A DNA stretch of 64,000 bases. Source: Setoptus koraiensis. Lineage: Eukaryota; Animalia; Arthropoda. Location of the stretch: the NCBI GenBank assembly GCA_048013815.1, contig CM106585.1, forward strand, positions 16,058,001 through 16,122,000, read 5' to 3'. This document shows, in pieces, positions 23,143 through 48,444 of this stretch (its first letter is position 1; the number at the start of each line of letters is the position of its first letter). The translations under genes were made by a program, and so were the position numbers. The notes beneath the pieces are model-generated. The model was not told the DNA's origin. It did not search any database and was given only the letters and a program-made list of their open reading frames with translations.

Positions 23143-24850
23143 GTGAGTTTTTTCATTTTCAATTCAATAGCCAATAATGAGTGGAGGCAAATCAATTGCA
23201 ATCAATTGAGTTGTTGGTCTTTTGTAGACGAAACCAAAGACGAGAATAGCTGCCCGGCCGCTTGCCGTTGAACGTTGATCTCTCGAGAGTTGCGAGTCAG
23301 AAGGTCGGCGCGGCTTGATGAACTTGCAGCAAAAAGACAATATGTCACTAGGGTTACTTTCGCCCTCTGCTGCTGTCAATACGACAGTTATATATATATA
23401 GCGCGCAACATTGGAGCACTGGACATGGCACAAACACAACGGGGCAACCCAGATCAATTGTTGCGACTTTGTATTTGTGGCCATTGTGACAAGTGGGCCA
23501 CATTATTATTATTATTATTATTATTATTGCTGTTGTTATTATTATGCTGATCGGTGTGCGTTCGGTGTGGAGCTCATCAATGGCCAGTTATTTCGCCATT
23601 GATGAGCCATCGAGTGTGTACGCACTGTGACAAATGACAATGCCAGCGTCAGCTGACCAGCATCTTTTGACAGGCCCACCAATGACCAATGTCACTGTCA
23701 CTGCTGTCACATTGACAAAGAGCCCTGGTGACCAGTGGTCACTGTCACCTGAGTGCCGCACACAACAGTCTGTTTGTGCGCCGTGGGCAGCTTGATTGCG
23801 CAGCTTGCGTCATTTATGCAAATAAACACACACACACACACACTCACATTGTGACACTGAAAACACTGTTGCGCAATGGTAGCGACACTCAACTGACCAA
23901 CTGGACGCCAACGAGTTTCAAACTGGCCAATTAACTGGCTGGAAAATAAACAAAATTTCAAGTGAGCGCTTGCAAATATTTGTCTCAGTAATTGTTTTAT
24001 GTCGTCCGAGCAGCCGACCGAGTTAGCTCGGCATAGTGCATAATTGTTGCTGGCGCCATTGTCGCAGCCATGACACAACACACGACACAACACACGACAC
24101 AACACACGACACAACACATAATGTGACACATGATGTGATACATGATGTAATATTGTGCCGCATTCCAGTGCAGTATTACATCATACATTATGCAGCGTGC
24201 GGTGTTAGACATCGCATGCAGGTGAGCACATATCTCACACTGGTTAGACACTGGTGCCCAACTAGTTATATTTAATTGCATCTTGGTGTTGTGAGTGTGT
24301 CCAATGGCAGCGCTCAGTTAATTTGATTAGAGCTTAGATTAGATTTGAGTGGAATGCGCATTGCGTCATATCTGTGGGGCTAACAAGTTTTGAGAGGTCG
24401 CAAAGACTCTGCCAAAGACTCTGCCAAAGACTCTGCCAAAGAGACGACAAACGATGAAAGTAAACAAACAAACGGCCGTGAGACAGATCCAGTGACAGTA
24501 GACAGAGCGAGACACAGTGTGCGGGGGAGAGCGAGAGTTCTCATCGAGATATGACCAACAAGACGCCAGCGATGACCCAAATGTCATCTGGTGCAAACAA
24601 ACTGCATTCAACTCTCTCTGTCTCTCTCCGTGTGCGACTTTCCCGATCACTGACAGTTCACAATTTGAACTTCATAACTCGAAATATCCCAACATCGTCA
24701 GTCACATATGTATGTATAGCTATAACTGTCATTGGGTAGACGTATTGTCACTTTCTTCTCACACACTCTGGCTGTCGTTACATTTATACATTGTTTGTAT
24801 TCTCAGCGGCTCGGGCTAATTGGCTCAGCGACGAAAATGAGCTCGCTCCC

Positions 24851-29942: not shown

Positions 29943-32900
29943 GAACAGTACACAACGAGGAAGAAACGGCTCAGCAAACTTGACTTGAATCATCCTCATG
30001 TGGCACCTATTCAGCCGCAACATAAAAACTTTGCCACCAACCAAGTGCCCACTACTACACCGGCGCCACCTCTCGACAAATTGTTCACCGGAACAGTGGA
30101 TAGTGGGCCCGCAGTGGCGGATATTCGAGAGCCGTTGCAGCCGTTGGATATATCGCAAGCTGCAGCGCACCACGAGGGCCCACGAACGGCAGCGCCATCA
30201 GAAGCCGAAGTAGCAGCAGCAGCAACGACAGAGACGGCAGAGCGATCAACTAACAGTATAGTGCCAAACAAGGATTACAACGCAACCGGAAGTGAGCAGC
30301 ATGCTAACAATAATGTCAACAATGCGGCCGGATACACCAAGCACCGGTCGACGCCTAGCGACGGTGGCGATAATCAATTTAATTTTGCCTACGGCGATCA
30401 TTTGGCGGCCAGTAACGGCACTGCAACAAACAATGACCATGGCGCCATTGCGACAAACAACAAAACAAGTGACATCGTGCGATCCGGCGACCAGGGCCCC
30501 CCGCATCATCAACATCAGCAGCAACAAGTGTCCGAGGACTGGTCATCGGGGCAGCTGGAAGGGGGCTACTATCAGCACGACCATGGCGGACACACGACAA
30601 ACGGCAAAAGCGCCAACAACGAGCTCGATTTGGACAATTTTCCACTGGATGGGTACCAATTAGCCGAAAGTGACCAGTCCGCTACCATTGCGGATAAAAA
30701 TCGCCATCAACGGACACCGGACGACGCCGACGACGACAACATTGTGTCCTCGAGCTCGTTTGCCTCCATGGAAAGGATTCAACCGACAACGTTCGTCAAC
30801 AAAAGCCCACAGTTTGTGTCCAGCGATGGCCAGCGAAATACCACTTCCGGCCCATCGAACTCAAACCTGACCCTGGTTGGCGGCCGTGCCGGGCCCGAGT
30901 TGATACCCATCACGAAGCCGTTGGGCGCGGTAGAGGGCGCTGATGATGATTCAGAAAGTTATAACAGTGCCAGTAGCACCCATTTGCCCCACTATTACCC
31001 TAGCTCCCCGACATCGGGTTATCACGATCTAGGCGGCTTCACAATGTCGGCCACCACCGAGGCCACAAATCCGTGGATACCCACCACTCTAAGCGTGGAC
31101 AATGGCGCCAGCACAACGTCCGACGGCCAACTAGACGGCGAAACTGAGCCGGCCCCAACGGGCGCCAACACCGACGTCATGCTGTCTCAATCCTCTGAGC
31201 GCGCATCGTCATCGTCCCAACTAACGTCTGTCCAGCTGACCACTTCCGGTCACACTTCTGTCAGCAGCAACAGCGGTGGCGCCATGCAACACTGGCCGCT
31301 CTCAACGGTGAGCCCGGCCGCCCACGACGATCAGTTGGGCTTCGATCAAATCACTTCTCCAGTCACGACGCCCGTCAGCGCCCTCGTAGACTCGCCCAGC
31401 GTACCGGCGTATGTCGGCGCGCCCTCTAGTGAGTCAGCGACAACAACCATGCTGAGCAATGACATCGCCACAGGCTACAACAACGGATCGGCCATCAGCA
31501 ACTTTTGGCCCGGCGGCTCGGGCAGCGGTGATGCAAAGGCGCACGATGCGACTCGTATAGCGGGCCAAAACACTTCCGGTTCGGCGACAACACAACCCAG
31601 TTGGTCATCGCTGGACATCAGCGGCAACGATTCTGTCAGAAATAGTGATCACGGCGACAATTTGCTCATCGCGATCGGCTCTCAGCCGGTGTCGGCCAGC
31701 GACACTCAGTCGAACGGGACCCGGGCGGCCAGTGGCGCCGACGGTGCGGCCACCACGACCAGGCCAGACGGCGGGCAGCAGCAGCCGCCACCGCCCACAG
31801 AAAGTGACAGTTCCAATGATACGATCGCACAACAGAGCGGCTGGGTGGGCGACCGCAACTACTTGCCCGTGGCCGCCGTCACCACGCAAACGCCCGTGGT
31901 CGCTGCGAGCACGGGCGATCCGCTCAGCGGCGCCGGAAGCGCCGATCAAGACGAAATGGGTGTGTCGTCATCGTCGCCGCTAAGCGTTGTCGTGTTCGAC
32001 AACGGCGGCGCCGGATCGCCGCCGCCGTATAAGTACGCAGAAAATCCGCGTCACCTGCCCAACTATGGCGCTGTGTTCGGCGTGCGCAAATCGCCACTGG
32101 GCAACTCGTCTGCGTTGCAACTGACAGTTGCAAAGCAGCGATTTTCTGAGCCTCTGGCCATGGTGTCCGACAATGAGCTCGGCAACAACAGCAGCAGCAT
32201 CAGATCTCAGAGGGCGCCGGCGGCGGGCAGCGACCTCGGGCCGGACAGAGCGCCGAACTCGGGCGCACGCAATGAATGGCGCGAATCGTTGTCGCCAGTG
32301 CATCACATCAACAATCTGGACAGCGGCGGGGGCGCCGGTCTCGACACGGACACGTATAAGACGTCCACTGGGGCAACAACTGGCGTTGAGCAGCAGCGAC
32401 AGCTGGCGACAACAAGCAACAACAACAATGTCAACAACAATGACGATCGGGGGGCCTCGATTACGCAATCGAGCACGCTGGATCAGCTGGACAACACCGG
32501 AAGCAGCGAGCATGACGGCAACAAACAATTAGCGCCACCGTCGCCCGTAGGCGACGACGACGATTTTGAGCCATCTGTTGGGCCCGATGAAGCGGCCAAC
32601 AAGAAGCGCCAGCAATACTATTTGAGAGAACCGGAAGTAGCGGTTGTGCCGGCCAGCAGCAACAGGTCGGCGACGCCGGAACAGGCTAGACAGAGCAAAC
32701 AAAACAAGACACACAAACATAGCTATGTCTGGGGCAAGCGCGCCTCCAACAGTACCGACCGGAAGTGGACCGGTGAGTCGGACAAATCAGCACTGCGACC
32801 AAATCAGTTAGGCTCAGCGCAGGCCGACGCCGCTCGGCAATCCGCTTACGACGAAAGCTCAAGCGGCTCCGACCAGGCAAACGCTGACCATCATCACAAG

Positions 32901-35900
32901 TCGCCCTCATCGGGCGACTATTTTGTCGGGGGAAATAACGCGGGACAGTCACTCGTTCAACATTCAGACAGCAATAATCTGGACGGTAGTTTTTACACAA
33001 ACGATTGGAAGGGAGTCAGCACCTTAAACAATTACTACAATGTGTCAAGTGCGGCCGAACGGCACACCCACTCGGACGACACCGGCCCGCTGTCGGACTC
33101 GTCCGGAAGTGACTCGCCGGCCCGCGATGCAATGGCGCATCATACCACACGAGCGCCAAGCTCGCGACTTTTAAGCAGTCGCGTGCATGTGTCGGGCGAC
33201 ATAATTATATCGACAGCGTCGCCATCGTTGATGGCCAACAAACAGTGGCAGACCAAACAAAAACCGGCCACAAGGGGGCGATCGCACAGCGATAGGCTCG
33301 ACGAAGACCAGGCCGGCCCGACGGCGGCCGAACCGGACGAGCCGGGCCCCAACGAGCCGACCAACAGGCAGTATAGTAAACAGGTTGCAACAACAAGTGG
33401 CGACGACAACGCCGACTATGATCAGGTCTCGCCGGACAGTGACGCGCACAAGCGACCGAGACAAGAGAAGCGACAAGCGAATAAGAACCACGGGACCCGT
33501 GACTCCGGTCAGCATTCCAAGGCGGCCCGAAAGAAGCACAATCGCCTTGTGAGCGGCGACGAGGAACAGCAAGCCGGCAACGGGCCCGATGGCGCCGATC
33601 ATCCGGACGAACGAGGCACGCCCAATCGGGGCCCGACAACCAAACAATCGCTCAGCCGGCCTCAATCCAGCAATCAGTATCCAAATGGCGAGCGCAAATA
33701 CAACAGGAAACAACAGGAAGCAGATTTTGCGGGCCGGGACGCCGACCAACGGGCAAAGCAGCATCGGGCCAACGAGTTCGAACTGAGCAGCACCGGACCG
33801 GGCACCGCAGTCAGGTCGCCCGGCAGCGCCAACAGCAAGCAGCAGCAGCACCATAGTGAGGCACCCGGTGACACGCCCACCGGCCAGGAGTGGTCGGCGG
33901 GCGATCAAACGGAGCCCGAATCGATGGGCACCAGGCAGAAAGAAAATCACAACTACGGCTCTCAGACCATTGGCGTTCGTCTGGAGCCCAAGCTGCCGCC
34001 CACTATAAGCACGCTGCGCATTGTCAACGACGACTTTGCCCGCGAAAATCCGTCGCCGGCCCGCAGGCCGCCGTCGACATTTCCGGCGCCCGCACTGGAC
34101 GAAATGAATCTCAAATTGAAACAGCTGGCGGCCGAAAACAAGCAATCGGAGGCGCGTCGCCAGGCTCGCCAGCCCCAACAACATCAGCCGAGGCGCCACC
34201 TACAACGGGCCAACAGAAACGACACCAGCGGTCGGTACGGGCAACCGCCGCACCACACCGAGATGATGCACCGCGACGAGTCGGGATCGCAGCCCTTCAA
34301 GATGGCCGCGGCCGGAAACAAGTACCTGTTGCCGCGGCATCAGCTTATGCAGCACAACCCCTTTCAGCAGCATCAGTCGAGCGCGCCCTATCCGCAGCAC
34401 AGCGTGCACTACGGCCACTGGCAACCGGGCGGCCAGCCGCGACCGGTGCCCGGCGGCCAATATTACCCGGCCATGCAGCACAAGCAGCACCAGTCGCAGC
34501 AGTTTTACGGTGCGCCGGCGGCGCCAAACAGTCGCCCGCCGCATCACTACGGGCACCCGCAACAGCCGGCCCGACAGCCGCTTGCCAGCTACATGCACCA
34601 AGCGGACAACTCGCAAATCTTTCAACAATCACTGCAAATGGAATCGGACTTCCAGCCCATCATGGGCCAGCCGCACCAACACCAGAATGTCGTTCAGCAC
34701 AACAGAACCAACCACAACCGCTATTATGCGGTTGCGCACAACAATCCGCCGCAGCACCCGTCCGCGTCCGGCCCGACCATGGTTCAGTACAATGTGAGCT
34801 CGCTAGAGCCCATAACCGTGTACAATCCGCAGCCCACCTACGAGGAGTATCTCGCCGTCCAGGCGGGTCCTCCGCAACAACCAAACCTAGAGCCGTCGGG
34901 TCCTATCGGCCAGCCGTCGGACGACGACAATCGGGCCAGGTATCACGCCGCAAGTCAGGGCACCCGATTGAATCAAGGCTACGATCAGCAGCAGACCTTC
35001 ATGAGCGCCGGCTCGCCCGATCGGCAGTACTCTCAGATTCGCGATCCGCCGCCCAGATACCCGATGGCCGATGTCGGGCCGGCGCGGCCCGTCTACGGTC
35101 ACAGCCAACAGCAAGCGGACAGCCAGCGCTACCAAATAGCGACCATATACGACAACAAACCGCAAGTGGATCAACAGGGCGAACAATCGGTCAACAACGA
35201 CAACAGGTGGTCGGTGTCCACATTGCCCTACCCGCCGGCTGCGCCCCGCGCCAAAGAATACTTCACCCAGTACAAGGTGCTGGAATCGGGGCCGGCGCCG
35301 CCGCCGCCGCCCATGCTACTCAATCAAAGTCCCGCAGAAACGATCTTCGGACCGGCTCCGCCGGGCCAACAATTGGCGGACGGTCAGCCCGTCAGATATG
35401 TCCCGTCAACGGGCGCCAATATGGCCGGTTACGAATATGCAAACGAATACAGTCAGCCGATCGACCAACAACAACTATCGCACAACAACAAGCAACCAAA
35501 CATCTATCAAGCCTCGGCAACAAATATCGCCGACAAGCCGCCGCACGACCACTACCCCTTGCCCGTGTATCACCAGCAGCCGCAGCAGCAATACCCGTAC
35601 CCGGCACCGCCGCAATACGACGCGCCGAGGCACCGCCCGCCACAGTATAAGCACCAGCAGTCTTACCAGCAGCAGCAGCAGCAACATATGAGCAAGGCGC
35701 CGCCTCAATACCAGCCGATGCACCATCAACAGCAACAACTGGGAGATCCGGGCCCGAGCGGTCAGGCGGCCGACTACAGCGGTCAGCATCAGCCGGTTGA
35801 GCACACGGGTCTGTCGTCCAACCGGAACATTGTGCAACAGAACAGCAACCACAGCGGCAATAGAGCGCGGGATCCGCAATCCGCCGCGTTGCCGCCCACC

Positions 35901-38900
35901 GACGGCGCCCCCAAGGTCAACGAGCCGGCCACTGTCACCGGGCCCAATCAGCTGTTTTGGGAGGCTGCGGTTGCGGCGGCCGCCGCCGCCGACGAGGCCA
36001 ACAACCCAGGTCAGCAAAGCCGCAAAAGCAGGGCACCGCCCTCCAACGGTCACCATCCGCCCCAGCATAGGGTTCCGCCGCCAATACCGAACGGAGAACT
36101 GCCGGACCAGCCGCAGAATAATCCGATGCCTACGAGCAGCGGTACCCGAAGTTCCTATCAGCGCCCGGCCCAGTACAAGCCGCACAACAATAATGCGGTG
36201 ATGCACCAGCGCAGGCCAATGAGTTACCCCTATCAGACTGGCGCCTCGTCTAGCGTTTCGCCCTCGCTGGCCGGCGGCACCGCACACACCAACGGACACG
36301 CCTTTGCCGGCTTGCTGAATATGGCCGCTCTGGAGCGCTCTCTGTTGCCGCATTACCTGGGCTCCGCCAGTGTCATGGCGCCCAGCTTTCTGCCCATGGG
36401 CATGTCCGGCCCGATGGACCCGTTGGATTCGCTCAATCAGCAAGCGTTCAACATGGCCGAAGCCAGCCAATCGCTTCAGGCCGACGGACAGCAGCAGCCC
36501 GTAGTGTTGCCCGGCGCGTCGGGTACGTCGTCCAGCGGCGACGAGCTGCCGCCCCCCGCGTATCAATTGCAACAGGCGGGCCATTTTGCGGGCCATTCTC
36601 CCGCGGAGATGGCCGCCGAGGCGTACCGGCAATTCAATTTGCAACAACAGCAGTCCATTGGTTTGAACGCGGCCAGCATGACCAACGGGCCCGGCCAAGG
36701 CACCGCCAAGCACCCACAGATCGCGTCCGGGTCGCTGAGTGGGGTCGATCTGCCGCTGGCCAACCCGACCCTTGTGAGCGATCCCTTCGGGTGGCCCTTG
36801 GCGTACGGAAGTGACGCCGCCAAGGCGCTGATGAAGATCAATCACGTGGCGCCAGCGCCGAGCTATTTGTTGCCCGCCGGGGCGGGCAAGAACGGAGCGG
36901 GTGCCGTGGGTTCGTTGTCGCTCGAATCGGGCCGCCATCAGACCATGATGTCGGCCGCGGCGGCCGCAACGGCCGCTTTCAGCGCAAACGCACTCGGTCA
37001 GCCGCACGGCAGCTATTTCGATCACCAGATGGACGCGGGTTCGGGCCACTACATGATCTCGCCAGCGCCGCCCATGATTCATCATCACGTGCATCATCCG
37101 CAGCCGGGCGTGTTGCACGTGCCGCTGTCTACCCGACCGCCAACCACCCGACGACCGCTGTTTTGGGGACTTTTCCGGTCGCGACATCGCCAAACGAAGC
37201 GTCGAACCGGCGCCACCAACCAAGCCGACACAGCGTCATCATTGGCCCCTCTGAACAACACAACGGCAATCGGGGGCAACCCATCGGGGGCGACAAAACG
37301 ATCGGCTAGGCGCAAGCGCAACGTGCTGAGCACAATATGGAACAGTTTCAACGGGGCCGCCGGAAGTCGGTCCACGCCCGCCAACGCTAGCCAACTGGCG
37401 AACCATGGCAAGACAATGGTGCAAATGGGCACCAATTTGGGCCAAAATCAAAACATTGTCAACAATCAGCCCATTTTGCATGACTTCGAATCGTTGCTCA
37501 TGTTCGACGACGATCAGCAGCGGCCCGTGCAGCTGAACGGGATGCCGCCAGTGACGGGCACAAACCGGAATGGGCCCTCTACCGGCCCGACGCCGCTCAG
37601 AACCAGCAACGACAACCGGCCGCAGCAGCTGCAATTGTTGCGCGACCAAGACACCCAGATACAGAGCTACACGCGCGACATGATGAGCGATTCGGGTTTC
37701 AACATGAAAGACATCGAGTCGCTAGAGCGGGACATTCTCAGCTCGGCTCTGCAAGTCAACGCGAACGCACACGAAACCGGAAACGGAAACAAGCAAGCGG
37801 CCACGATGATGTCGCCGGCCACGGCCGCCTCCGTTCAGTCGGCGTTCATTCATCACGAGCCCGCTGTCGGCAACATTGAGCCGCCCGTCAATGTTCCGCC
37901 CCAATACAGGCAGCAGCAGCAAACGCTGGCCACGGTGCCCAGTTCGCCCGGCGAGGCACTCAAAAGTTTCTCTCGGGCCATTCTCAGAACGTCGGGCGAG
38001 TCGCTGTTGAATTTGCGCAAGGTCACCAATCAGATATTTGCGCCCAAATTGTCCGCCCAGATTGCAAATCCCAAATCGCCCGTGCCCACAAATCACTCGC
38101 AAATGGGCCCCGAAGAACAACTTCTAGGCACAAATTCTAGGGATTTTTCAGCCAGGCAGCAGCACATGCAATTCAACAACAACACGCCAGCGGCGCCCCA
38201 CTTCAATTTGCCCCTCATCGACATCCACACAATGCCCAACAACAAACCCTTCACTCACTTACAGCAACAGCTGACCGCCTTGCCCGCCGAAAGTCTCATG
38301 TTCAAGGTGGCCACCGGAAACGGCGCCCAGGACAGTCTGTCCGTTTTGCCGCTTCATCTTGATCTCATGACGCCGGCGCCGCCGCGACCCGTAATAGTAA
38401 ATTCCGTCAGCCAGGAGGCGGTCAAATATCAGCCACAACAGGTGTACCCGCGAATGGGGCCCAAGGCCAGCGTCAAAATCAAACAGCTCGACAATATGAC
38501 GCCGCCCGCTGCCGGCACGGGATCGATCGGGCCGGGCACGACGTCGTCCATAATGATGCAGCTGATAAACTCGATGGCGGCAGCGCCGCAGCAAAGCGTT
38601 GCCGCCGCAACCGGCCCGTTGGTGAGCGGCCTGCTGGAAAGAAAAACCAATTATATTCTCAATCCGCACAGGAGCACCGAAATCTATCGGCCCGTGCGCC
38701 TGATTCGACCCGGCCAACGGCGACCTCCAAATCGGCATCGGGTGCCCGCGTTCGGCATGTCGTCGGGACCCGACGACACCGCAGACCTGTTGGGTGTGAC
38801 GAGTCAACAGGTGGACCACGAAATGCCTCTCGTCGCCAGCAACAACATGAGCACAGTGGCGGCAACAAGCAAGTTTGACAACATTGGCGCCTCTAATGCG

Positions 38901-41060
38901 ACCAGCGCAATACCACCGGAAGTGACGCGCGATACCATGCGGGCGGCCGCCAATCAGCGCCACGATCATCTGATTTATCAGACCGACCATCAGGCCATGA
39001 GTGAGCACAACGAGCCGGAATCTACTACGCAAATAAAGCACACGTACCGGCGCAATCGGCACCATTATCATCCGCCCGGGTATGTGCACGGTCGTCACCA
39101 TTTGGCGCCCCATCATCATCATCAGTATCCGCTGATGAGCTCGCCCAGGGGCCAGTACAGTTTGACGGGCCCCAATCAGCGTCAGATCATGGAAAACAAC
39201 GGCAGGCACAATGCTGCAACAGCAGCGGCGGCCCTCATGCTCGCCAGCCAAAAGTCCGGGCCTCACAGGGGCCCGCACAAGGGCTCGCAACCGGCTCAGC
39301 GGCAGCAGCAGCGCGGCGAGACAACGACAATCAGCGACGACATGGATAATCTTCATTCGGCGCAATCGTCAGCCCACGATCACATAACCTCGTTGGACAA
39401 CAACAACAACGCCAACAACAACAACCTGTTCAACAACAAACTCACCAGTGACCCGAGCACGGGCGACTTTTTGCCCTCGGGGCACCACATAAGCTCGCAT
39501 TCAATGTTGCCCTCGCATCACCAGCAGGACCACACCTACACCATTGTGCCGACGGGCGCCACGGGTAGCGGCGGTGCGCCGGGCGGTAACGGCGGCGCCG
39601 GCAATGGTCAGTATCGGGCCATCACTCGGGACACGTTCACCACAATAAACGACGTGCCCGTGCCCCACACAGAATCCGCCGTGTCGGACCTGATGCTGGC
39701 CGATCAGCTGGGCTCGGCCTCGTCTCTGAGCGAGCCCACTTCGCCCACCAGCCAAGTGGGCGCCCCTGGCGACCAGGTAACGAAAAACTTTCCAACAAAC
39801 TACAACTATGACAATCATCATCATCACTACATGCCAGCGCAGGCCACCAATCAACCTGCCGGCTTTGCGTCGGCGGGTCACTATCACCATTCGCCGCTCA
39901 TACCCAGATATTTGACCATGGCCAACAGGTTTCGTCAGTCGTTGTATCAAAAACTGAAACACAGCAACCTGTTGCCGCGCCCCTTCGTTCAGCTGGCCCT
40001 CAAGCCGGCACTCATGTCCGCGTCGCCCAGTTTGCGTTACCCGAAATTTTTGCCCGGTCAGGGTATAATAAACGCCAACGGTCAGTTGCAGCACCCGAGC
40101 TTGCACCATTATCCGTCGTACCTGTTGCCCGCGATGCAAGCCTCCGCGCAGCAGCTAGAGGCGCACAACGACCCGACCGCCGCCGGCCAGTCGGGTTCGT
40201 TCTTTGTGGACAACATGGGCCAGTTGCAAGGCTCGGGCCCGAGTGGGGCCAACGGGGGCGCCGGCGACAACAGCGCCAGCTTTCATTACCAGTCTGCCGA
40301 TGGCGACCCGTCGCTGTTGAATCAGCACGAGGCAGCGCAATTGTTGCAGCATCATCATTCGCTTCAAGTTGCCACTTCTAGCCAGCAGGAGCCCACTATG
40401 AGCATAAGCCAGCAACAGTATCAGCAGCAGCAACAGCACATGTCGGGCCAGGCCGGATCCGCGGTGCTGATGGGCGGCGGCGGCGGTAGCCCGCAATCCG
40501 CAGTTGATGCAGCCGACAGTGGCGAACTGATGGAACTGGACCCGTTGACGGGCCAATTGCGCCCGCAAAGCCACTCACTGGCGGACGGATCGTCGGTCAT
40601 GCTCAACGACACAATGCCGTCGCAACCGCATCAGGTACCCATAATGCACCAGTCGTCCCAGAGTGAACAAATAGAGACACTGGAGCCGTATTCAGAGCAA
40701 ACCGGAAGTCAGAGCAACGACTACAACGGCAACAACAACAACATTCAGCATATCAAGCAGCAGCAGCATCATATCAACGGCGACGACCGGTACAACCAGG
40801 CCTTTCAGCAGCACCACGCCTTGCTGAAGAGTGACCATCATCATCACCATCATCCGCATCAGCAGCAGCATCAACAGTTGGACGATGGCCAGCCGACGGA
40901 CGAGCATCACAGCGAGCACGCTTGGACGACAAGCTCGCAAATGTTTGCCGACATGATGTCCGCCGATCACCATCCGAGCCACTACAATCACAGCAGCAAC
41001 AACAGCAGCGCTGCTGACCATTTGAACAATCGCAACATTGACAACTATCGCACCACCACC

Positions 41061-41092
<32 letters not shown>

Positions 41093-44000
41093 CAACAGCG
41101 TGATTCAAGACAGCCAAAGCGACAACTACGACAACAACACTCTGCACTACCATCACAACAACAACAACAACAACAACAACAACAGTTTGACAAACGTGGG
41201 CAGCGCAAACGCGCAACGCCAGCGTCACATGATGCTGATAAGGCCAAATCACACGAGACTCGACATTGTCGAGATGATGCCCATTGTCGACAACGGTCAA
41301 CAAATGAACAACAATGTCAACCTGTCCGACGATTCCGGCCCGACGGATGCATCGCGCGACAACGACGCGCCCGACCAAGCGAGCGAGCAGCAGCAATCGT
41401 CCAACTACCAGAATCACCAGAACCACCAGAGCCGCCACAAGAACCAAGATTACCACATGGTTCAGGCTGCGTCGGCCAGCGCCGAAACGGGCGCCACTCC
41501 GGACGGCCAACCGGACTCTAGCGGCGCTCAAACAGATCAATCGGCCAAAAACACACCAAACGACAGCTCAGAGGCGGACCCGGAACCGGAAGCAGAGTCA
41601 GCGGCCGATCAGCAGCAGCAGCAGGAACAGCAACACGATTCTCAGTCGGGTCAACAGCAGCAAGTGTATGAGGTGAGCCAGGCACCCGCTTCGCAACAGC
41701 ACCAGCACCAGCATCAGTCCCAAGGCGGGTACGCTCAGAATGGCGCCCAGGAGGACCCAAACATCGTGTACGGACGACAGCCGGGCATGTTGCTTGTGAT
41801 GAAGCAAAATGGAGACCAAACGAGCGAGCCCTTGCAGCGGCAACCCGCGGCCGGCATAGAGTACGATTTCAGACCCGTGTCGCCAGTCGTACAGCCGGCC
41901 CGCAACAGACCGCCCGCCAACGCGCCAATGTATCAATCGACAAAGCTCAGCAAACAACATTCAACAGACAGTGGCTTCGCTGGCGACAGTGGCGACACAA
42001 ACGAGCCCAACAGGCCTGTCGCCACTGACACTCACGAGGCCTCTTTTCGGCCGCTCGTTCCCCTGGTGACGAACCCCTTGAGTTACTTGCGATCCAATCA
42101 AATGCACGGCAACTCGAAGCAGCACCGCAACAACGCAATCAATTTCAAACTGGCCAACTACAATCACAACAACAACAGTAGATCTTCCACTAGTGGCATC
42201 AACGAGGAAACAACAACAATTCAGCAGCCAGATACAGATGCCGGCACACAAAACCAGATACCTAGCTACACACTGATTGACCAACCTGTCGTAATAAGAG
42301 GCTCCAATGATGCCGAGTCGGGCGTCATGATGCCCGCTTCCGTTACTAGTAGCACGGACGATCAATACTCTGTGTTGGCCACCCCAACAAATGTCAACAA
42401 CATTACATCGGCGACACCCACGGCAACTCCTAGTGCCATTACAACAGTGACAACATCACCGGATTCATCATTAATTAACGCAAAAAGATTATACAACAAT
42501 CAGCAGGCAGCAACGGTATACGATGCTGCAACAACTGCAAGCAAACCAAAGCTGTTTGTAATTAATAACGCCAGACCAATAGTTAATATCATCACGGCCA
42601 GTGGTCAGTCGTCTAGCAACAAGACCAGTATCGGTGTTGATGGCGACGACAGCGTGAGCGGCACGGATCACAATCAAACAGTGATACACATCAAGCAAAC
42701 CAAGAAGCGCCCAATTAAGTACAAACTCATCAGTAACAACAACAACAACAACGTCAGACAGCAGCAGCACAATAACGCGAAGCATCTGGTTTCAACTAAA
42801 ACCAACGATCTAGTGACCACTACTGACCAAAATACACCAAAACAAAGCTCGCTGGACAGCAGCTCTCATACGGTCGGCAAATCTAATGCGCCAACGAAAC
42901 AATCGCCACCCAAATACGCACAACATACCTACAGCAATCACAATACTCAGGTGAGGGGTCATCATGATCCCGACAATATAAAGAATCACAATTTGAAGAG
43001 CACCAATACGGGCTCGATGGGATCTCAATCGCAACGCCACGCGACAACTGCCGCCCATTTGAATCAGCGAAACGGGCACAATGCAACCACCAACCAATCG
43101 GCCTCAATGCAACAACAACAACAAATTAGCAAACAATTGGCCAAATCTAAAATCAGATGGCAAGGCATGATTGCGGGCGAGCACGGCGGCGCCAATAACA
43201 ACAATAAGCAAAACACTAGCAGCAGTAGTGGCAGCAACAGCAATTTCACAACAATTGGCGCAACAACACCTCAGACAACCACCACAATTGTGTTGGACAG
43301 TCACGAGGTTGCCGCCTCGAGTCACCAACACAAATTGAATGGCGCCAATACCCCAACAACAGTGTCGGTTTTGAGCAACAGGAAGGCAGAGCTGATGCAA
43401 CAACAACAGCAGCAACAGCAACATGATCAGGCGGCCGGATCAAATCCTTGGACAACCATAAGCAACAACATACCTGCAATAGTGAGAATGACCAAAACAA
43501 ACACAAACGTGCCACTTCAGTCTAATCAACAGGAAGTGGTTGTGACCAATTCAACATCGCCTATGACAATGATGATGATGATGATGGCCACTACATCGGC
43601 ACAAACGCCACAGCAGAATCAGCAGCAGCAGCAGTCAACAGTTAGCCATGTCGATCAAATGAACAATGTCGATCATGTGGACGGCAACCCAATGAGCCAA
43701 GACAACGACAGCCAATTGAATCAATTGGCACTTATCGAGCAACAGAGATTGCTGTATCAGACAAACAACGACACAACATCGTTGAAATCAGCCGATAATC
43801 AGCTCAGACAAAACAGTCAGTCATCATATCAGGAGCCAATGATGACCACCATGTCTAACAATATGGAAGAGGTCACTCAATTGCATAGACCGTATGCTGC
43901 CGCTGCTGACCACTCATTCATATCACCTGTGCCAACCACTACTACTACTAGCACCACTACTACTACTAGCACTACTACACCGCCACCAACTACAACCAGC

Positions 44001-44666
44001 ACTTCTACTACTACTACCAGTACAACTACTAGTCCGGCCAATAAAGAAATGAGAGTGTTCTCCAGTTACAGTGGAGGTCTGAGGCACCTTCAACACCAGC
44101 CGGTCACCTTGAGAAGCCAACAATTGATGCAGGCGGCCTCGGCTGCTCTGAAAGCCAGAACTCGTTCATCTAGAACGGCAACTACATCATTTAGGTTATC
44201 AAATTCAAGTGCCCTCACTAGCTTGATAGCCAGCAAGGCCAATGGCGCCGCAAGCATCAGCGCCAGCCTAGATAAACAGCCAAACAAGCCGACCAACTTC
44301 CATCATCACAGCTCTATAATCAAACGCATAGACGACGGAAGTCACATTGGAGAGGCCATCACGACAGAGGAATCTCCTACATTGCCACTAACATCGCCAC
44401 TGTCCAGTGCCGATGCCGCACCCACAAACAATGAGCCAGATACTAGGTGGTCACCCAAGGATTTTCAGCACTATCTCCTAGATAAAAAACAAGATAATGA
44501 ACAACAATCCATGATATCTGGCTTCACTCCATCTATTGTATCATTCATAATACGCCCGGTCATAACAACAACCACAACTACCACGACAACACATAAACCA
44601 GACAATAGGATGAGACTCGAGGTTTCCATGGGCACCGATCAACAACAATTGATCTTAAAAGAATAG
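29943..44666 (+). CDS. Exon 3 (14.7 kb, 4,907 aa) of a giant secreted, intrinsically disordered Q/S/N/H/P/T-rich protein (~5,141 aa total); no recognisable domain
   Basis: A 14.7 kb stop-free frame, with a TGTAG acceptor at 29942 opening it in phase 0 (EQYTTRKKRLSKLDLNHP...), matching the exon 2 donor. Stop TAG at 44664-44666. Confidence 0.9.
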
Positions 44667-44772: not shown

Positions 44773-47115
44773 CTATTTCTTCGTTCTGGATATACTTGAC
44801 TGTTGTAATACTTTTCTAGATAGACGCATCTGGCCATTGGCAGCATCGCGTCCATAATATTTGACTTGAATTTGTTGGCCTACCTCTAGTCCCAGCGCGC
44901 TAGGGTGCTTAACTGGTCTAATGTCTAATTGTCTTAGAGGTAAAAGGGTTGGGGTCATCTTTGGATACATGGTGACCATCACGCCATGATCTTTGATTTC
45001 CGTTATAGTGGCCGAGTATATAGCATTAAACTCTAGCTCAGTCTCAACGGGATCATTCTCAATGAGACTCTTGATGTATTCCTCAGCTTCATCCATGGCA
45101 GCTTGATTTGGAGCGAACACAGTAAAGATATTATCATTGTTTATATTTTCAGAATCATCATTGTCAGTATAAGCGCTGCCAGTCACTCTTACACCAATTT
45201 CATGCATTAACTTCTTTATATTGCAACCACCAAATCCTAGGAACTTGGATCTCTTGTGTGGTGGTATGAGGATTGACTTAATAACAGGATGATTTTCTTT
45301 CCTTTCTTCTCTCGGTGTTTTTATCACATCCTCCATAATGTTGAGCACTTCAATCTTAGCAATGTGTCCCCTCCGGATGGCTTCGCTTAAAATATTCAGA
45401 GGCAGACCATCGCTCAGTTTGACATCCAGCTGAAAGGCAGTAATTCCATGTCGAGTTCCGGCCAACTTAAAATCTATATCTCCAACAAAATCTTCCAAAC
45501 CTAATATATCAGTGAGAAGATAATATTCTAAATCAGGCACTTCGTCATCTTTTTTCTCAAAGTAAGGCCAATCTGTCTGATTTCGTTGCTTGTTTGAGTT
45601 TTCAATATCATAAATCTGGTCTAAGTTACTTAATAAACCGATAGCTACACCCGCAGCTGGCTCTGATATTTTCACTCCAGCGTCCATCAGAGCCAAACTA
45701 CCAGCACAAACACTGGCCATAGAGGAGGATCCGTTCGATTCTAAAACTTCACAATTTAACCTGATAGTCATTCCAACATCGGATGGCACTATGGGTCTCA
45801 GCGCTCGTTCAGCCAAGTTACCATGACCTATCTCTCTACGGCCTATTTGAGTCTTTCCGGTTTCGTTAGTAGCGTAAGGTGGGAATTCGTAGTGCAACAT
45901 GAAGTTTTTATCTTTCACACCACCAGTCATAATTGTCATAGCGTCGTTCCTGAATGCGGCATCTAATGAATCATATGTACAAGAACAAAATACTTGTGTT
46001 TGACCTCTCTGAAAAATTCCTGACCCGTGTAGTGGTTGAAATAGATCCACGGCACATGATATCTTTCTTAGTTGGTTCAATTTCCTACCATCACATCTAA
46101 TTTCTTCGCTTTTTAATTGTTCTAGGTAAATTTTACGGAATAACTTCAGAAATGCAAAATTAAGCACGTTGGGATCAATAAGTGGATCCTGTTCTTTCAT
46201 CATTTCGAGAGCATCTCGTCTGATTGCTTGCATCTCTTTGTCCCGAGATACCTTATCGTGGTTGACGTTCCGAAGCGTATCGGTCAATCTAATCTTACAC
46301 AAGTTTTCATAGGTTTCTAATTGTTCTGGACTGAGACTATATTGCTGAGTGATGGGTTTTTTGGTTCGACCGTGTGACTCTTGTAGATTTCTTATATCTT
46401 TTATGATTTTTTGGCACTCTTTCACGCCTAGCTTGAGGGCTCTGAATAGATCAGGTTGCATAATAGGCTCATTACAGCAACCATCGAGCATCATGATATT
46501 ACCGCTTTCGGTGGCTGTAAGTATTAAATTCAATTTGCTCCGAGACATTTCTTTCCTCGATGGGTTAACAATGAGATCACCTTCTATCATGCCCATTCTA
46601 ACAGCACCAACAGGTCCATTCCAGGGTATATCGGACAGAGCCAGGCTAGCTGATGCGCCGTTTATGGCTAGAACATCTGGATCGTTTTGGCCATCCACGG
46701 CCAGTAAGTTACATATAACTTGGGTTTCATTTGAGTAGCCTTTGTAGAATAGAGGACGAATAGAACGATCAATCATGCGGCTAACGAGTGTTTCTTTTTC
46801 TGTGAAACCGAGCTCTCTACGTAAATGTGTCGTGGGGATCCTTCCAGCGGCAGCCGATTTCTGTCTGTATTCCACTGTGAGTGGAACAAATCCAGGACTT
46901 GATCGAGAAGACTTGTCACTAACAGCGGTGACTAGGACAGTCGTCCCTTCTCGTCGGACGGTGCAGGAGCCATCAGCAAATTTGGCAAGTTTTCCTGTCT
47001 CTATACAAATGCTACTATTGTTGGACTGAGAGGTCGTCGTGAACGATCTGTGAAGCCAGATTCTCTTGAGCCATGAGGTCGCGATACGCGATCTTTGAGG
47101 TGCCCTGGTCGCCAT
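44773..47115 (-). CDS. PNPT1: Polyribonucleotide nucleotidyltransferase 1, mitochondrial PNPase, intronless, 780 aa
   Basis: IETGKLAKFADGS, FVPLTVEYRQK, LVSRMIDRSIRPLF, RCDGR, HGSGIFQRGQTQV, RREIGHGNLAERAL, LESNGSSSMASVCAGSLALMDAGV, DFKLAGTRHGITAFQLD, plus KH and S1 domains. Confidence 0.97.
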   Translation of the reverse strand: MATRAPQRSRIATSWLKRIWLHRSFTTTSQSNNSSICIETGKLAKFADGSCTVRREGTTVLVTAVSDKSSRSSPGFVPLTVEYRQKSAAAGRIPTTHLRRELGFTEKETLVSRMIDRSIRPLFYKGYSNETQVICNLLAVDGQNDPDVLAINGASASLALSDIPWNGPVGAVRMGMIEGDLIVNPSRKEMSRSKLNLILTATESGNIMMLDGCCNEPIMQPDLFRALKLGVKECQKIIKDIRNLQESHGRTKKPITQQYSLSPEQLETYENLCKIRLTDTLRNVNHDKVSRDKEMQAIRRDALEMMKEQDPLIDPNVLNFAFLKLFRKIYLEQLKSEEIRCDGRKLNQLRKISCAVDLFQPLHGSGIFQRGQTQVFCSCTYDSLDAAFRNDAMTIMTGGVKDKNFMLHYEFPPYATNETGKTQIGRREIGHGNLAERALRPIVPSDVGMTIRLNCEVLESNGSSSMASVCAGSLALMDAGVKISEPAAGVAIGLLSNLDQIYDIENSNKQRNQTDWPYFEKKDDEVPDLEYYLLTDILGLEDFVGDIDFKLAGTRHGITAFQLDVKLSDGLPLNILSEAIRRGHIAKIEVLNIMEDVIKTPREERKENHPVIKSILIPPHKRSKFLGFGGCNIKKLMHEIGVRVTGSAYTDNDDSENINNDNIFTVFAPNQAAMDEAEEYIKSLIENDPVETELEFNAIYSATITEIKDHGVMVTMYPKMTPTLLPLRQLDIRPVKHPSALGLEVGQQIQVKYYGRDAANGQMRLSRKVLQQSSISRTKK

Positions 47116-47646
47116 GTTTTCAAAATAATAATTTAGTTTCTTATGGGCTCAGAGGGAGCTGGAACAATCTGGGCGATGCGGCCGATATAAAATTGTTGCG
47201 AGAACATAGAATGGACGGATAAAACTTGACTACACATGCTTTTGTAAACACAACATTCCGGTACTTATCTGCACATGTTCGAATGCATGCAGAACGTGGC
47301 GCCAGTTACAATTTGCTTATAGCCCTCAGGGTACAGGGTTTGTCCGCGGCACATGTTATGGGATTTTATCACCCAGCAGAAAAATGGGACCGTAAAAAAA
47401 ATTGTAACTGGCGCCAAATCCTATACGAACATGCGCAGACTAGTACCGGAATGTTGCATTTATATGAGCATGTCGTCGAATTTTATCTGTCTAATATTCT
47501 CAGATTAATTTTATCTCTCTCACATTCGTCGAATTGTTACAATCGAAGCTCGTGAGGATTATCAATTACCTTTGGAAAAATCGGATAAATATTTTGAAAA
47601 CATGGCGACCAAGGCACCCCAAAAATCGCGTCTTGCGACCTCATGG
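47071..47646. promoter_or_regulatory. Imperfect ~576-bp palindrome spanning the PNPT1/eIF3g bidirectional promoter and both start codons
   Basis: Outer arms 47071-47127 and 47590-47646 are reverse complements at 52/57. Inner arms 47297-47314 and 47399-47416 match 18/18. Revcomp of 47251-47281 vs 47426-47456 matches 28/31. Confidence 0.9.
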
Positions 47647-48444
47647 GTCGATCAGATGAAAGAGCACTACGCAGCAGATCATCTACCACCCAAAACGGAG
47701 ACTATTAAAGGCGACACGAAGGAGATAGTGGAATATAAATTTGATGAAAATGGAAAAAAGACCAAAACAGTAACAACTTACAGAATTATCAGGACACCAA
47801 TAACAGCTCAGATGTTGGCTAGGAAAAATTGGAAAAGTTTTGGTTCGACGGCGTCCGACGAAAGTAGCAAGCCCGAAACCCAGGACGAAGAGATTATTAT
47901 GCAATTCGTCAACACCAAGGATCCAGAGGGCGAAACTAAGGCCGAAGATGACCCCTGGACCAAGGCCAAAGCTGTCAATCAAAGCCTGTTCAAATGTCGT
48001 GTTTGTAAAGGTAATCACGCAACAGCACAATGTCCGCTCAGCGACAGACTGGACATTACACTTAGGGATGATCTCGTCTCCGCCGACGGGGCTGGTGCTA
48101 AGATTGGTGGAAGTGACAAGTACCAGATACCAGCAAGTAGAGGTGGTGAAGCTAGCGGCCGAACCAGAGAGACCATGAGCTCTAGAATCAGAGAGGATCT
48201 GAACACTGTCCGTGTGACAAACTTGCCAGGCGAAATACAAGATGGTGATCTGAAAGATCTCTTCCAAACTTTCGGAAAGATTACTAGAATATTCTTAGCC
48301 AAAGACAAGTACACAGGAACATCCAGAGGTTACGCATTCGTCAGTTTCGATTGCCCGCAGAGCGCACTGTTGGCCGTTAATACTTTAAATGGTTACGGTT
48401 ACGCGAATCTTATCCTCAAAGTCGAAGTTGCAAAGCCCTCATGA
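47602..48444 (+). CDS. EIF3G: Eukaryotic translation initiation factor 3 subunit G, intronless, 280 aa
   Basis: SWVDQ N-terminal motif, KEIVEYKFDENGKK, ARKNWKSFG, Zn knuckle CRVCKGNHATAQCP, and a C-terminal RRM (VRVTNL...IFLAKDKYTGTSRGYAFVSF...LNGYGYANLILKVEVAKPS). The true start is taken as ATG 47602 rather than TTG 47572. Confidence 0.96.
   Translation: MATKAPQKSRLATSWVDQMKEHYAADHLPPKTETIKGDTKEIVEYKFDENGKKTKTVTTYRIIRTPITAQMLARKNWKSFGSTASDESSKPETQDEEIIMQFVNTKDPEGETKAEDDPWTKAKAVNQSLFKCRVCKGNHATAQCPLSDRLDITLRDDLVSADGAGAKIGGSDKYQIPASRGGEASGRTRETMSSRIREDLNTVRVTNLPGEIQDGDLKDLFQTFGKITRIFLAKDKYTGTSRGYAFVSFDCPQSALLAVNTLNGYGYANLILKVEVAKPS

Follow-up and report, generated by a model that had tools for sequence, protein, structure and literature searches.

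How do a mitochondrial enzyme and a cytosolic translation factor come to begin with the same amino acids? The question is raised by a 64,000-nucleotide stretch of the mite Setoptus koraiensis (assembly GCA_048013815.1, contig CM106585.1, positions 16,058,001 to 16,122,000 of the forward strand; hereafter the window, in whose own coordinates positions are given), in which PNPT1, the mitochondrial polynucleotide phosphorylase, and eIF3g, a subunit of a translation initiation factor, share their N-termini. The gain or remodelling of organelle-targeting peptides in nuclear genes is usually reconstructed from old and blurred events, mostly in plants. An earlier note on this DNA had proposed that the first 15 codons of eIF3g were recruited as the first half of a PNPT1 targeting peptide and then tuned by lysine-to-arginine changes. 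Our comparisons suggest a larger event: very probably, about 290 bp of the eIF3g 5′ end were duplicated in inverted orientation and joined in frame to PNPT1.

The two genes are arranged head to head, with ATGs at 47115 (minus strand, PNPT1) and 47602 (plus strand, eIF3g) separated by 486 bp, so that the divergent pair lies within the 1 kb spacing by which bidirectional promoters are defined. The coding features on which the argument turns are as follows.

44773-47115, minus strand: PNPT1 (mitochondrial polynucleotide phosphorylase), 780 amino acids, a single uninterrupted intronless open reading frame, identified from the list of open reading frames, homology and Pfam.
47602-48444, plus strand: eIF3g, 280 amino acids, with Pfam eIF3g (PF12353) and RRM_1 and with relatives 52-60% identical.
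47071-47115, minus strand: PNPT1 codons 1-15 (MATRAPQRSRIATSW), a copy from eIF3g; 42 of the 48 bases in 47068-47115 match 47602-47649.
47068-47070, minus strand: PNPT1 codon 16 (Leu), ambiguous between the donor Val16 and the old PNPT1 Met1.
47602-47649, plus strand: donor codons 1-16 of eIF3g (MATKAPQKSRLATSWV), with the same N-terminus in about 50 eIF3g relatives.
46990-47067, minus strand: PNPT1 residues 17-42 (KRIWLHRSFTTTSQSNNSSICIETGK), the former presequence of PNPT1 itself, leading into the conserved LAKFADG core and aligning with residues 2-29 of 29 relatives.

The PNPT1 frame opens with MATRAPQRSRIATSWLKRIWLHRSF (47011-47115 are its codons 1-35) and is 52-61% identical to arthropod PNPT1 over 95-97% of its length. 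Pfam finds RNase_PH in two stretches (E 3.6e-48), RNase_PH_C (E 1.4e-12) and KH_1 (E 1.6e-06) and gives no match to S1 (PF00575) reaching E 0.001, and most relatives in the clade are likewise without a recorded S1 hit. The maximum-likelihood tree places this protein within an eriophyoid-like clade supported at 100/100 that contains the PNPT1 of Aceria and Fragariocoptes, where it adjoins Fragariocoptes and lies outside a group of 29 species whose PNPT1 begins with MD(R/K)VA. On the other strand, eIF3g starts with MATKAPQKSRLATSWVDQMKEH and carries PF12353 at residues 34-149 (E 5.6e-24) followed by RRM_1 (E 7.6e-17).

Codon-by-codon comparison of the two starts bears out the earlier description exactly, with 8 of 9 four-fold degenerate sites identical and the replacements K4R, K8R and L11I from eIF3g to PNPT1; V16L was also found, and the likeness stops after codon 16. 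The likeness over 15 codons thus stands, while its extent had been understated, since identity runs upstream of both ATGs and takes in the whole intergenic region. Indeed, 47068-47649 forms one imperfect, decayed palindrome of about 580 bp, centred near 47357, with arms of about 290 bp each and about 240 bp of homologous flank per side beyond the coding part. Its non-coding parts are the following.

47116-47357, minus strand: PNPT1-side arm, a leader and promoter-like region copied from eIF3g, recognised by alignment to the eIF3g arm; its last 91 nt hold no ATG.
47358-47601, plus strand: eIF3g-side arm, the eIF3g promoter and 5′ untranslated region (5′UTR), recognised by the arm alignment; an RNA-like contig begins at 47508.
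47251-47265 (partner 47442-47456), no strand: perfect 15-nt block AGTACCGGAATGTTG with an ETS-like ACCGGAA core, the name denoting resemblance only.
47297-47314 (partner 47399-47416), no strand: perfect 18-nt inverted-repeat block holding TGGCGCCA, the innermost well-kept part.
47315-47398, no strand: palindrome centre or spacer, about 84 nt, with little symmetry (32% of columns identical).

Global alignment of the arms gives 88% identity in the 65 nt around both ATGs and about 76% aligned identity with many indels in the distal leader. The block 47399-47507 reaches 80% aligned identity, including the perfect 18-nt and 15-nt inverted blocks, and a perfect 20-nt block, TTTTGAAAACATGGCGACCA, covers the start codon of each gene plus 11 nt of leader. 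Aligned locally, the arms score 139, compared with 18.3 +/- 2.2 for shuffles (z ~54) and with a highest score of 27 among 400 other real stretches of the window, which excludes chance similarity and demonstrates that the arms are homologous over this whole extent.

Short consensus matches, which carry little weight, were also seen in the arms: an E2F-like GCGCCAAA at 47408-47416 stands at -191 of the window eIF3g and has a counterpart roughly as far out, about 170 nt before the ATG, in the eIF3g of one relative (locus L003), the mirrored place in the PNPT1 arm reads GCGCCACG, and the ETS-like ACCGGAA is kept in both arms. Elsewhere in the window, the 18-nt promoter block has a single near match, at 24041-24058 (3 mismatches), with TGCTGGCGCCA in common, possibly a promoter motif that recurs.

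Which gene gave and which received is answered by the relatives. About 50 eIF3g proteins of the eriophyoid-like clade (52-60% identical) open with MAAKTQQRSKFATSWVD(T/Q)MKEHH, distant eIF3g retain SW(A/G)(D/E), and the N-terminal motif SW(A/V/G)(D/E) is found in the window eIF3g and in almost every full-length hit, close or remote. Conversely, 29 PNPT1 relatives in the clade open with MD(R/K)VA, and MAFFT alignment places their Met1 on residue 16 of the window PNPT1, whose residues 16-42 correspond to residues 1-29 of theirs; Met and LAKFADG are 42 amino acids apart in the window PNPT1 versus a clade median of 29. Since the peptide is common to the eIF3g proteins and the PNPT1 relatives start otherwise, it belongs to eIF3g, and the donor proposed by the earlier note is upheld. 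Copying ran from eIF3g to PNPT1 and is specific to the window's lineage among the sampled relatives, and the identification of eIF3g as donor and PNPT1 as recipient is well supported by these alignments for both origin and direction. Moreover, because the Met1 of the relatives falls on window residue 16, an existing short presequence gained 15 residues at its front and lost its old Met, so that the peptide is not the first half of a new presequence, as had been supposed. At the loci compared in four relatives, two per gene, PNPT1 and eIF3g lie apart from each other, and neither gene has a comparable inverted repeat upstream. None of 19 neighbour proteins from these four relatives' loci is encoded in the 64-kb window, a result that is uninformative on which gene moved.

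Two features of the clade itself may be mentioned here: eriophyoid-like PNPT1 (P0001-P0030) has a median of 29 residues from Met to LAKFADG versus 62 in other animals (P0031-P0120), and its second residue is acidic (MD or ME).

Initiation of PNPT1 downstream of the shared segment is impossible. Methionine occurs only at residues 1 and 114 in this part of the protein, the latter already within the first RNase PH domain, a stop codon lies in frame upstream at -36, and the last 91 nt of the presumed leader contain no ATG. With no in-frame Met before 114, full-length PNPT1 can start only at 47115, and on the reading frame the copied ATG is its obligatory start. As to transcription, an RNA-like run (X6) gives coverage at depth 31 over eIF3g between 47508 and about 48473 (contig 47508-48289); at PNPT1 the same run yields only two low-depth pieces, further inside the gene.

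From these observations we propose that, in an early-branching eriophyoid-like mite lineage, about 290 bp of the eIF3g 5′ end would have been duplicated and inverted, the copied piece comprising the proximal promoter, the 5′UTR, the ATG with its surroundings and 15-16 codons from the start of the gene, and not, as in a simple recruitment, 15 codons only. The copy would have been fused in frame with PNPT1, either at its original start codon or beside it, leaving a palindromic head-to-head pair and a PNPT1 without its original Met, whose product would carry MATRAPQRSRIATSW ahead of the former short presequence of MD(R/K)VAKKLTRVV type. A foldback duplication at a DNA break is the likely mechanical origin, judging by analogy with described cases. 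As for the consequences, the copied arm would now drive PNPT1 transcription, making the pair a palindromic bidirectional unit. The extension would belong to the cleaved presequence, raising the net charge from about +3 to +6 and the length before the core from about 29 to 42 residues. Cleavage by the mitochondrial processing peptidase would fall near RSF/T (residues 23-26), and eIF3g would stay cytosolic owing to its own continuation, acidic from residue 17. Taken as a whole, the DNA event together with these consequences, we regard this explanation as probable. The strongest form of it, in which one inverted duplication created a palindromic bidirectional promoter coupling eIF3g and PNPT1 expression, replaced the start codon and supplied a functional, charge-adding part of the import signal, is a tentative proposal that we consider rather doubtful. 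If true, it would offer a datable animal example of a targeting signal lengthened or strengthened by borrowing from a non-mitochondrial gene.

Several observations weigh against the proposal or limit it. The RNA-like run covers neither the PNPT1 5′ end nor the intergenic centre, which leaves the PNPT1 transcription start site and any activity of the copied promoter as predictions. The contig with the PNPT1 of the nearest relative, Fragariocoptes (P0009), begins at about codon 55, so that its N-terminus and its neighbour lie outside the contig, and the window protein branches outside the 29-species MD(R/K)VA clade. The closest date that this allows for the event is later than its lineage's divergence from all of the relatives sampled. 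Around the ATGs, the 65-nt block has changed slightly less than the rest (Fisher P = 0.04), which may reflect constraint on the start context or patchy gene conversion and not pure neutral decay. Finally, the best amphipathic and Tom20-like stretch lies at or past the junction, and PNPT1 residues 1-15 may be dispensable.

This last point leads to the question of what the copied peptide does. In line with the earlier note, it is basic and free of acidic residues: the 15-mer carries a charge of +3 and is rich in Ser, Thr and Ala. Residues 1-36 of PNPT1 contain 5 R, 1 K, 12 S/T and no D or E, the first acidic residue stands at 39, and the net charge over residues 1-38 is +6. The eIF3g protein turns acidic from residue 17 (VDQMKEH), an acidic continuation that the note had pointed out, and has a net charge of +2 in its first 25 residues. 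Such a basic, acid-free extension plausibly suits mitochondrial import. The hydrophobic moment of PNPT1 peaks at 0.73 over residues 10-20, straddling the junction (0.58-1.02 in relatives). The receptor Tom20 binds a pattern of hydrophobic-x-x-hydrophobic-hydrophobic residues, and LKRIW (16-20) is the only such motif spotted by eye; RSF/T (23-26), also read by eye, fits the R-2/R-3 processing rules. Do residues 1-15 help import to a measurable degree, or are they simply tolerated? On these features the matter is finely balanced, and we would put a contribution at slightly below an even chance.

The same DNA event may equally have carried the peptide along as a passenger, the capture of promoter and start codon being what was selected or fixed, with import relying on residues 16-42, the old presequence, and the 15 added residues tolerated on account of their basic, acid-free make-up; this explanation we also hold to fall just short of an even chance. 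In relatives, a mere 29 residues or so ahead of the core are sufficient, the peak amphipathic moment (10-20) and LKRIW (16-20) sit at or beyond the end of the copied part, and the 16 codons, a length without statistical power, give by the Nei-Gojobori method (NG86) a nonsynonymous divergence (dN) of 0.12, a synonymous divergence (dS) of 0.19 and a dN/dS of about 0.65, with no adaptive signal. On the other side, all four replacements keep or raise the basic or hydrophobic character and none is acidic, an argument that is weak with 16 codons. The proposed tuning by K-to-R changes finds no signal in these same rates, and at position 8 most eIF3g relatives have R, so that the K8 of the window eIF3g may be the derived state.

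The age of the copy bears on both the inverted duplication and a further alternative. The Jukes-Cantor distance of the aligned non-coding arms (0.24-0.29) is close to the coding dS of 0.19, which fits a single event followed by roughly neutral decay, and the duplication is far more recent than the divergence from any of the relatives sampled, in whose proteins about 40% of the residues differ. Alternatively, the arrangement could be old and parts of the arms kept alike by gene conversion between the inverted repeats, as the patchy identity might suggest, with perfect 15-20 nt blocks amid indel-rich stretches and the better-kept 65-nt block. However, four relatives have neither the adjacency nor the palindrome, perfect runs of 18-20 nt exceed only slightly the length of roughly 15 nt that we estimate as expected for 290 nt at 76% identity, and conversion would leave donor and outcome unchanged; we therefore regard an old arrangement as improbable. 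A foldback or MITE-like (miniature inverted-repeat transposable element) mobile element between the genes, whose terminal inverted repeats supplied both gene starts, would account for a long inverted repeat with a spacer, but the arm ends encode an eIF3g N-terminus conserved in about 50 species, that is, ordinary eIF3g sequence, and no further copy of any conserved block occurs within the 64-kb window, which makes this explanation very improbable.

The palindrome also recurs in two contig sets assembled separately. Both arms are present in a separately assembled contig set (X3) with 9 differences over 2.7 kb, none inside the shared blocks, and in another contig set (X1) with 3 differences, where a single contig spans the whole region; X1 is possibly the origin of the window DNA, while X3 carries its own single-nucleotide polymorphisms (SNPs). 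Although inverted duplications are known as artefacts of some library types, a foldback chimera of the assembly (or chance similarity) is refuted, since the arms differ by about 24% with indels and run into two different intact genes, separate contigs with their own SNPs carry both arms, and the alignment controls exclude chance. As a detail of that assembly, the palindrome centre is a break point of the X3 contigs, and a unitig of 55 nt joining 46588-46612 (plus) to 47362-47391 (minus) is probably a graph artefact at the inverted repeat.

How far the event inferred here resembles known systems depends on which of its parts is compared. In plants, the cytochrome c1 presequence came from exons of the cytosolic GapC gene (Long, de Souza, Rosenberg and Gilbert, PNAS 1996, as cited in PMC2031878), so that there, as here, the N-terminal coding segment of a cytosolic housekeeping protein lies within a mitochondrial presequence. 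As far as that account goes, the plant case involved intron-mediated exon shuffling and a segment that itself supplied targeting. In PNPT1, by contrast, there are no introns, the copied piece took in promoter and leader as well, the copy lies inverted beside its donor and a presequence already existed. Copies of rice rps11 acquired presequences of atp2 and coxVb (Kadowaki et al., EMBO J 1996, as cited in PMC2031878) and likewise gained a 5′ segment by duplication from another nuclear gene; as represented there, those donors are mitochondrial proteins with working signals, whereas the PNPT1 donor is a cytosolic translation factor. Among animals, the hominid Par17 prepeptide is also a lineage-specific N-terminal extension before an existing protein, tied to mitochondrial targeting, a role that was tested experimentally; unlike the PNPT1 extension, it was not copied from another gene and arose gradually from its own gene's upstream sequence (PMC2031878). 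Foldback inverted duplications at DNA breaks are documented, and as in this locus the inverted duplicate adjoins its template with a short spacer, but the described cases are large, somatic or pathological (PMC10622511, PMC3907307), whereas the duplicate at this locus measures about 290 bp, is fixed in the germline and reads in frame into the gene beside it. The locus resembles ordinary bidirectional promoter pairs in having two divergent housekeeping genes less than 1 kb apart; such promoters are not palindromic copies and their two proteins have no common N-terminus.

The gain of presequences by copying 5′ segments of other nuclear genes in plants, and lineage-specific prepeptides in animals, were thus already known. 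The points of difference here are an animal case with a cytosolic translation factor as donor, the joint copying of promoter, leader and codons, inverted beside the donor, to give what would be a palindromic bidirectional promoter, and the extension of an existing presequence with none created afresh. Donor and copy are immediate neighbours that have kept 88% identity. The mechanical trace, a palindrome of promoter, leader and codons, can still be read, and the locus illustrates that a single local rearrangement can change promoter, leader, start codon and N-terminus in one step. With two arms and 15 residues, the locus also provides a compact system for asking how a basic, acid-free add-on affects the strength of a presequence and whether a duplicated promoter arm suffices for a second gene. 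For annotation, the shared N-terminus is genuine, and gene callers should not 'correct' it.

Annotation matters in the relatives as well. Many of their eIF3g models (P0151-P0166) start at the internal MKEHH; in one locus (L003:7947-8001), the usual MAAK...SWVD start is encoded from an ATG that lies in frame 54 nt further upstream, and an intron/exon boundary right after the shared segment was ruled out there, the open reading frame being continuous with the upstream ATG. The models that start at MKEHH are gene-caller truncations and not introns. In Fragariocoptes setiger (JAIFTH010000055.1, L006:1-420), the deposited 1307-amino-acid 'PNPT1' is a fused gene model whose product includes zinc fingers as well, and the assembly breaks exactly where the palindrome would sit if the species had one. 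On the far side of PNPT1 in the window, a 4893-codon open frame (29985-44666, plus strand) encodes a low-complexity protein rich in Gln, Asn, Ser, Thr and His, lying tail to tail with PNPT1 at 107 bp from its stop codon.

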